A DNA stretch of 58,196 nucleotides, counting the filler, from Platydemus manokwari (lineage: Eukaryota): the NCBI GenBank assembly GCA_037951405.1. It is 5 parts of 5 records of this genome, joined end to end, with 100 filler letters (N's around TTAATTAATTAA, not from the genome) between each part and the next. Parts side by side here need not be neighbours in the genome. Positions count along the whole stretch, not along the records: positions 11,029 to 23,375 come from JBBMOY010176674.1; 4 more parts are not named here. The stretch is one strand, 5' to 3'. Of the stretch, positions 15,324 to 15,680 are shown piece by piece (positions within the stretch are counted from its first letter, which is position 1; each line of letters opens with the position of its first letter). The notes under the pieces are model-generated. The model did no database searches, was not told where the DNA came from, and worked only from the letters and a program-made list of their open reading frames with translations. The position numbers were made by a program, and so were the translations under genes.

Positions 15324-15680
15324 TCAACCCACGTAAACATTTCTGCATTGAATCAAACATCTTCTGACGTTGTTTCGACATATACGTACACATCTACCAG
15401 TTATCCTATTACATCGTCGTATACAAACAGTTCTGATTATTCGGCACACTCTCACACAACGACGAATGACAGATTTACACCGTATAAAGCATCGTCTCGC
15501 TCCCACCGTACATCTGCGTATACATTGACCAGTTCTGATATTGCAATGTCTTCTGCAAACAATAACACCGGCGCGGCACACTCTCACACAATGTCGATTG
15601 ACAGACCACGCGTCGGTTGCAACAAAAATGATTGCAAACACCAGCAGAAACAAGTATTTCTTAATTATTAAATAATTCAC
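15324..15680 (-). CDS. Secreted Arg/Cys-rich repeat peptide (8 x CxxxC-x6); start codon unresolved
   Basis: Signal-peptide-like KKYLFLLVFAIIFVATDA, then 16 Cys in strict 11-residue register, 25 Arg plus 1 Lys and no Asp/Glu. AATAAA lies about 20 nt after the stop. There is no in-frame ATG; the ORF begins at GTG with a TAA just upstream. Confidence 0.75.
   Translation of the reverse strand: MNYLIIKKYLFLLVFAIIFVATDAWSVNRHCVRVCRAGVIVCRRHCNIRTGQCIRRCTVGARRCFIRCKSVIRRCVRVCRIIRTVCIRRCNRITGRCVRICRNNVRRCLIQCRNVYVG

Follow-up and report, generated by a model that had tools for sequence, protein, structure and literature searches.

Among disulfide-stapled cationic peptides, the alpha-hairpinins (EcAMP1, MBP-1 and Luffin P1, for example) are plant defence peptides which share the cysteine motif Xn-C1-X3-C2-Xn-C3-X3-C4-Xn and fold into a pair of antiparallel helices with an intervening loop, held together by nested C1-C4 and C2-C3 disulfides (PMC7191063). 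Several members are arginine-rich and either antimicrobial or nucleic-acid-binding, and their plant precursors are tandem and multimodular (PMC7191063). Two further points of reference are thanatin, with its disulfide loop C-N-R-R-T-G-K-C (PMC7913509), and the helminth predictions, which are dominated by lineage-specific, cysteine-rich peptides resembling antimicrobial peptides (AMPs) (Irvine et al. 2023, PMC10414684) and in which CXXXC is the commonest cysteine motif (PMC13149500). The subject of this study is a minus-strand open reading frame (ORF) encoding a cysteine- and arginine-rich peptide in a 58,196-nucleotide stretch of Platydemus manokwari DNA (GCA_037951405.1), referred to here as the window, within the piece contributed by JBBMOY010176674.1 (positions 11,029 to 23,375). 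We tentatively read the ORF, with somewhat less than even confidence, as a gene for a lineage-restricted secreted polycation of the disulfide-stapled cationic defence type, lying on the minus strand of a very AT-rich eukaryotic genome. Coordinates below are positions in the window and residue numbers are those of the ORF, whose features are as follows.

15324–15680, minus strand: whole open frame, 118 codons plus a TGA stop (15324–15326).
15609–15680, minus strand: signal-like N-terminal segment, residues 1–24, with a 12-residue hydrophobic core and small residues.
15327–15608, minus strand: predicted mature peptide, 94 residues from W25, with 16 Cys and 25 Arg.
15459–15590, minus strand: module 1, units 1–4, residues 31–74, the first 44-residue copy.
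15327–15458, minus strand: module 2, units 5–8, residues 75–118, the second 44-residue copy, with a C-terminal Gly.
15522–15545, minus strand: predicted turn 1, CNIRTGQC, residues 46–53 in unit 2, the cysteine mirror centre of module 1 (i + j = 99).
15390–15413, minus strand: predicted turn 2, CNRITGRC, residues 90–97 in unit 6, the cysteine mirror centre of module 2 (i + j = 187).

Translation confirmed in full the pattern described in the initial annotation, namely a signal-like segment followed by eight CxxxC-x6 units with 16 Cys, 25 Arg, 1 Lys and no acidic residue. The eight 11-residue units are contiguous, and their 16 cysteines, at residues 31, 35, 42, 46 and so on to 108 and 112, keep a spacing of strictly 4,7,4,7 throughout. 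The region that begins at residue 27 contains 25 Arg, 16 Cys, 14 Val, 11 Ile, 4 Thr and 1 Lys with no Asp or Glu, cysteine making up 17% and arginine 27% of this cationic part, and proline is absent from the mature peptide. For the mature part, which starts at W25, the calculated isoelectric point is 11.6 and the calculated charge +25.8 (about +26). The signal-like segment that precedes it runs from a Lys-Lys pair through the hydrophobic core (mean Kyte-Doolittle value 3.4) to small residues, which occupy positions -3 and -1 before W25 (T-D-A), with A-W-S as the alternative; cleavage would accordingly fall after A24 or S26, and the hydrophobic core together with the small residues suggests that the peptide is secreted. 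With all frames of the piece considered, the only CxxxC-x(5-8)-CxxxC stretch is the one in this ORF.

The eight units arose as two copies of a 44-residue module. The halves are identical at 22 of 44 residues (50%) and 78 of 132 bases (59%), and at the DNA level similarity is highest for unit pairs in register (67% for both 1-5 and 2-6, 55% for 3-7 and 48% for 4-8, with other pairs at about 40%), the identity between any two units ranging from 27 to 67%. The duplication of 2 x 44 residues, first proposed along with an identical 18-mer at 15442 and 15574 (132 nt apart), is borne out by this comparison, and the 18-mer proved to sit within a 32-nt repeat that is 91% identical. Tandem Repeats Finder reported no array within the ORF.

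Although 54 of the 132 bases differ between the halves, every cysteine has been retained. In 200,000 simulated trials, one half was allowed to change without selection until it had accumulated the 54 differences seen over 132 nt; the eight cysteines survived in none of these trials, and only 19% stayed free of stops. Between the halves, the proportion of nonsynonymous differences (pN) is 0.34 against a synonymous proportion (pS) of 0.62, and synonymous codon differences number 10 in the minus frame, 4 in the antisense frame, and 4 and 1 in the two shifted frames. The cysteine codons are mixed (TGT 10, TGC 6) and arginine is maintained through six codons. Since the guanine-plus-cytosine (GC) content of the ORF is 41–43%, as opposed to about 26% in the background and flanks, the sequence has not decayed to local composition. 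Because selection has kept every cysteine, this is real coding sequence, and the minus frame can be taken to encode protein, or to have done so until recently, with purifying selection on the cysteine register and little constraint elsewhere. The earlier view of a protein-level minus-strand feature, distinct from chance or a simple DNA repeat, is thus sustained by the cysteine retention in the simulations and by the excess of synonymous differences in the minus frame.

Structure prediction with AlphaFold2 was performed on the single sequence with no alignment, with and without the signal segment, and yielded a helix-loop-helix twice over (pLDDT, the predicted local distance difference test score, of about 80; mean 78.6 for the whole ORF and 81.0 for the mature part). 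In the mature part, helices are predicted at residues 27–45, 51–89 and 95–113 with loops at 46–50 and 90–94, which would make two amphipathic hairpins, each with its own turn. Because the 4/7 spacing is palindromic, the cysteines are mirror-symmetric about each turn, and four nested cross-arm disulfides are therefore possible in every 44-residue module; this symmetry is compatible with a C1-C4/C2-C3 connectivity and suggests that the cysteines may pair into four rungs per module. Each predicted helix has a hydrophobic moment of 0.47–0.57 at 100 degrees versus 0.13–0.25 at 170 degrees, and the cysteines within one helix span an arc of 60–100 degrees. It had been supposed that all cysteines would lie on a single helical face; this holds within each helix, both in the AlphaFold models and by hydrophobic moment, but fails over the whole length, along which the cysteine stripe turns through 180 degrees when each residue advances by 100 degrees. 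Foldseek searches against the PDB returned no match with E < 0.2.

A profile built from the two halves and searched against 177,635 PDB sequences matched thanatin with E values of 0.025–0.06, the better of the two matches to its disulfide loop being that of turn 2 (CNRITGRC). The alignment score was 44, compared with 29.3 ± 4.7 for sequences whose non-cysteine residues had been shuffled with the cysteine register kept, and 0.7% of the shuffles reached 44. The likeness of the turns is marginal, and convergence would explain it at least as well as common descent. By analogy with thanatin, it nevertheless speaks for an inner cysteine pair that closes a basic eight-residue loop.

The peptide is probably of the disulfide-stapled host-defence type, and the following course of events may be envisaged. 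Four 11-residue CxxxC-x6 units would have built a 44-residue module, whose duplication then gave the present mini-protein. The signal peptide would direct export and be cleaved after A24 or S26 to release a product of about 94 residues and about +26, each module of which would fold as an amphipathic hairpin around the conserved C-N-x-x-T-G-x-C turn. A four-rung disulfide ladder (46-53, 42-57, 35-64 and 31-68 in module 1, with the same pattern in module 2) would lock this fold into a rigid product, its Cys/Val/Ile stripe facing inward and its arginines outward. Outside the cell, the polycation would bind anionic surfaces, most likely microbial envelopes, with nucleic acids or sulfated glycans as possible further partners. 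Its mode of action would then be that of other disulfide-stapled cationic defence peptides, from which it is drawn by analogy.

Several observations weigh against this defence reading. The ORF lacks an in-frame ATG, its only usable splice acceptor is a weak AAG (A at -3), and no consensus-like donor was found for an upstream phase-0 ATG exon. The structure prediction is only moderate, because the five single-sequence AlphaFold models scatter from a pLDDT of 81 down to 48. Val, Ile, Thr and Cys dominate the composition and, with Chou-Fasman parameters, mean P(beta) is 1.18 versus 0.92 for P(alpha). At 94 residues and +26, the product exceeds most known antimicrobial peptides in both length and charge. 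The thanatin match is marginal and was chosen post hoc. Finally, no relatives were found, the evidence for conservation is confined to the internal duplication, and the gene is known from genomic sequence alone.

The search for relatives covered several kinds of collections. No match reached or approached threshold in Pfam, NCBIfam or the PDB sequences, for which the whole ORF, its mature part and the two halves singly served as queries; a word-index protein search with the peptide was empty; Rfam gave no match; and exact-product look-ups for the peptide ORF and a neighbouring ORF (described below) found no record. Metagenome, viral and prokaryote genome contigs, none of them a systematic eukaryote genome set, held no relatives when searched with the ORF and the two-half alignment, and six-residue strings of the peptide matched literature text only by chance. 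A full HMMER pass over 1.84 billion protein representatives returned a single match (E = 4.9e-5, 26% identity), an ORF designated P0001 on an 892-bp ENA metagenome contig (L001), which was rejected as a relative: it is a translated 33-bp minisatellite and its match an artefact of periodicity. The minisatellite occupies positions 550–846 of the contig in nine copies with 82% matches, has a unit with an internal palindrome, and extends to the contig end. Like the peptide ORF it reads as an 11-residue C-x3-C-x6 repeat; in contrast, it has acidic residues, no signal segment and a tandem array at the DNA level. The DNA itself repeats in P0001, whereas the units of the peptide ORF are 27–67% identical with cysteine alone constant. 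A DNA repeat by itself, as this contig illustrates, can yield a seeming protein with periodic cysteines. The suggestion that the peptide is undescribed has therefore stood up, since neither a characterised family nor a relative emerged from Pfam, NCBIfam, the PDB, the 1.84 billion representatives or the contig collections, and by sequence similarity the gene is an orphan within the collections searched.

A more specific proposal is that the ORF represents an undescribed hendecad CX3C-X6 scaffold, in which two fused four-rung hairpins with thanatin-like turns form a secreted +26 protein translated from an unconventional start, either a spliced-leader AUG or a micro-exon; taken as a whole, this proposal is doubtful. 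The ORF opens directly 3' of an in-frame TAA, and its first listed start is GTG, which is a start codon in the bacterial table only. The signals around it are:

15660–15661, minus strand: AG splice-acceptor dinucleotide, the sole AG that keeps the signal-like segment, opening an exon from 15659 in phase 0.
15300–15305, minus strand: AATAAA hexamer, a possible polyadenylation signal, 18 nt past the stop.

The acceptor is weak because its base at -3 is A, and it departs from the flatworm trans-splice acceptor motif UUNYAG (PMC12582326). Upstream ATGs followed by a phase-0 GT do occur, for example in a four-codon micro-exon beginning at 15895. The cis-splice models considered, one with an upstream ATG micro-exon and one that joins a donor close to the stop to the ORF farther downstream, were all weak and were set aside. 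In DNA as AT-rich as this, an AATAAA would be expected by chance within about 40 nt with a probability of about 0.1.

The same start region gives rise to the alternative that the ORF is a relic or was never expressed, i.e., that it was once selected, is now startless, and is either silent or spuriously transcribed, for instance by read-through from a retroelement on the same strand about 650 bp upstream. The missing ATG, the single weak acceptor and the want of a consensus-like upstream phase-0 donor all point in this direction, as does the fact that no identical or related product is recorded in the collections searched. On the other hand, the frame has remained intact over 118 codons although stop codons are common in such DNA, its GC content lies 15 points over background and all 16 cysteines are in place. 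According to PMC12582326 (citing Cheng et al. 2006), the flatworm spliced leader ends 3' in AUG and can provide the initiator. If the source organism trans-splices, the missing ATG is therefore not decisive, since the spliced leader can supply it; such an AUG could give a protein beginning M-K-Y-L-F-L-L..., a textbook signal peptide. A relic is on balance unlikely.

Rather improbable, too, is a secreted toxin for predation or defence that targets ion channels or membranes on the hairpin scaffold of the Cs-alpha/alpha animal toxins. Helix-loop-helix toxins of the form C1X3C2-Xn-C3X3C4 are indeed known, including kappa-hefutoxins, OmTx and conotoxins flf14 and vil14a (PMC7191063), and the fast divergence outside the cysteines (22 of 44 residues identical between the halves) is typical of toxin and defence genes. 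No toxin family scored, however, the best Pfam entry being Toxin_2 at E = 1.4, far below the cut-off, and a charge of +26 with no acidic residues is unlike that of known channel blockers with this fold.

A ladder of beta-hairpins in place of helices, held at a similarly low probability, would leave the function class unchanged, the product being a membrane-active cationic peptide of the thanatin or horseshoe-crab hairpin type, and so overlaps with the defence reading. It stays a live alternative because the residue propensities favour beta structure: beta-branched residues are abundant (14 Val, 11 Ile, 4 Thr), and of the two mean propensities P(beta) is the higher. The turn is similar to the loop by which the beta-hairpin of thanatin is closed, and the cysteine pairs obey i + j = constant, as expected for cross-strand neighbours. 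Against it, with a 4/7 spacing the offsets are even and odd in turn, which would keep some of the rungs from equivalent cross-strand sites, the hydrophobic moment is far greater at the helical than at the strand period, and both AlphaFold runs returned helices.

Less probable again is a structural or adhesive component of mucus, eggshell or capsule, or cement, in which cysteines would form intermolecular cross-links and arginines bind polyanions. The comparable flatworm adhesive proteins are very large and multidomain, and the peptide bears no similarity to them; its mirror-symmetric cysteines and conserved turns moreover point to intramolecular pairing, and it is present as a single copy of just eight units. 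What speaks for such a role is the content of 17% Cys and 27% Arg in periodic units behind a signal-like N-terminus, together with the cysteine-rich, Lys/Arg-rich repeat regions described for flatworm adhesive proteins (PMC8621496, PMC6745481).

Two remaining alternatives are very improbable. One concerns the opposite strand:

15279–15671, plus strand: antisense ORF, Ser/Thr-rich, with an ATG start and 130 residues, sharing its codon register with the peptide ORF.

If this were the real gene, the cysteine pattern would be its by-product, and its ATG, its mildly hydrophobic N-terminus (2.03 over 12 residues) and its openness in the same register are in its favour; it was nonetheless rejected on the substitution pattern as a by-product of the opposite Cys/Arg codons, for it shows 4 synonymous differences versus 10 in the minus frame, conservation between the halves is highest at its third codon position, contrary to the expectation for coding sequence, and it reads the invariant minus-strand cysteine columns as a T/A mix and the arginine columns as an S/T/A/P mix. 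The other, a helical protein that stores or binds metal and whose cysteine stripe holds Cu(I), Zn or Cd in the manner of bacterial copper storage proteins, draws on the presence of Csp1, Csp3 and Ccsp among the top Foldseek matches (about 20% identity), but these reflect cysteine composition and not fold, because E exceeds 0.2 with a template modelling (TM) score of about 0.3 and a root-mean-square deviation of about 18 A, and a secretory signal with +26 and no acidic residue would favour disulfides over thiolate clusters. Membership of the copper storage proteins, which are four-helix bundles with a cysteine-lined core, was rejected, three helices being predicted here.

The surroundings of the ORF are dominated by the retroelement mentioned above. 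Its domains were assigned from Pfam matches on separate open stretches, and the numbers of interruptions given for it are minima.

About 16327–21371, minus strand: degraded Ty3/gypsy-like long terminal repeat (LTR) retroelement with 61-nt terminal direct repeats.
Within 20821–21051, minus strand: gag remnant, truncated (Pfam).
Within 19720–20270, minus strand: remnant of a Monjiviricetes-type viral fusion glycoprotein, PF24664 (Pfam, best E = 4.1e-8, above the cut-off).
Within 17929–18486, minus strand: reverse transcriptase (Pfam).
Within 17304–17726, minus strand: RNase H (Pfam).
Within 16783–16935, minus strand: integrase zinc-finger remnant (Pfam).
14070–14492, minus strand: ORF lying downstream of the peptide ORF at a distance of about 830 bp, 140 codons long (120 if counted from the ATG at 14432), with a high content of Asn, Gln, Arg and Lys.

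The retroelement, whose presence marks the piece as eukaryotic, has a GC content of 40%, compared with about 26% in the background, and is located directly upstream of the peptide ORF on the same strand, the ORF lying outside it, about 650 bp past its 3' end. That the peptide might be a part of the retroelement was considered and dismissed, since the terminal direct repeats stop at 16327 and reach no further in the direction of the ORF. The element is dead, all of its genes being broken: pol carries at least three interruptions (at least two frameshifts and at least one stop) and the glycoprotein-like region at least two (at least one frameshift and at least one stop), while an integrase core and a protease went undetected in the Pfam scans of open stretches. 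The closest reverse-transcriptase fragments are only 49–58% identical to that of the element. The position of the viral glycoprotein remnant between gag and pol is unexpected, and the remnant may be captured or nested.

The ORF at 14070–14492 has no Pfam family, no homologue by word search and no exact record; it could represent another orphan gene or else belong to an unrecognised repeat. On the plus strand, a 46-codon ORF at 22789–22929 gave a sub-threshold match to the C2H2-type zf-met family (E = 0.0023, 18.7 bits versus a cut-off of 21.2) and could be an exon fragment or a product of chance. A run of 148 N occurs inside the piece at 13214–13361, and tandem arrays of A-rich, low-complexity sequence (periods 5, 9, 17 and 26), typical of AT-rich intergenic DNA, are found at 22662–22813 and 21513–21576.

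Should the peptide be expressed, the disulfide-stabilised cationic defence peptides would gain an architecture that is both compact and highly regular, with the rung number of the alpha-hairpinins doubled and their motif tandemly repeated in one chain, and such a rigid, protease-resistant polycation would be of interest as a structural scaffold. The gene would also exemplify how orphan defence genes grow by internal duplication with the cysteine register alone conserved, and would provide a test case for genes with no genomic ATG that gene callers miss. If it is not expressed, it is a decaying orphan ORF beside a dead retroelement.

Two other groups with paired CX3C motifs were compared with the peptide. 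Proteins of the small Tim type carry two CX3C motifs 11–16 residues apart, reside in the mitochondrial intermembrane space and have no signal peptide; membership of this twin CX3C group was rejected on the six-residue gaps, the signal-like N-terminus and the absence of a Tim10/DDP match in Pfam even at E = 10. The tachyplesin/polyphemusin type of horseshoe crabs comprises peptides of about 17–18 residues with a CX3C-X4-CX3C pattern, two cross-strand disulfides and an amidated C-terminus, and no match to it was found in Pfam, the PDB sequence library used being limited to chains of at least 20 residues.

The helminth AMP-like peptides, compared here by description only, are likewise lineage-specific, secreted, cysteine-rich and cationic. 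In contrast to the peptide, they are mostly shorter than 60 residues, their single CXXXC often lies in an unstructured tail, and a periodic eight-fold CX3C-X6 array is not described in that survey. With thanatin, the peptide has in common a strongly cationic character and an eight-residue basic loop, CNRITGRC and CNIRTGQC sharing the N, T and G positions of CNRRTGKC. Thanatin, however, is a 21-residue beta-hairpin with one disulfide and a Pro-containing N-terminal arm, whereas here the loop occurs twice inside a 94-residue, 16-cysteine protein and its flanks are predicted to be helical.

A further resemblance is to the alpha-hairpinins and the Cs-alpha/alpha toxins, whose cysteine motif occurs in every adjacent pair of units. 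The likeness to alpha-hairpinins that was proposed in the initial annotation thus stands for the cysteine motif and the predicted fold, but not for family membership: no match to an alpha-hairpinin, or to a vicilin-type or other multimodular plant precursor, was obtained in Pfam, the PDB sequences or Foldseek, nor by word search or the full HMMER pass, and the residue propensities lean towards beta structure. Since the peptide falls outside the size and four-cysteine definition of the alpha-hairpinins, has no sequence or fold match, and shares only the loop with thanatin, it is placed in no family. Briefly, an alpha-hairpinin has four cysteines and two rungs per hairpin within about 28–51 residues and comes from a plant, whereas this non-plant peptide of 94 residues has eight cysteines and four possible rungs per module, an inner Cys-Cys gap of just six residues, and two modules that are apparently fused via one long helix, with no obvious processing linker between them.

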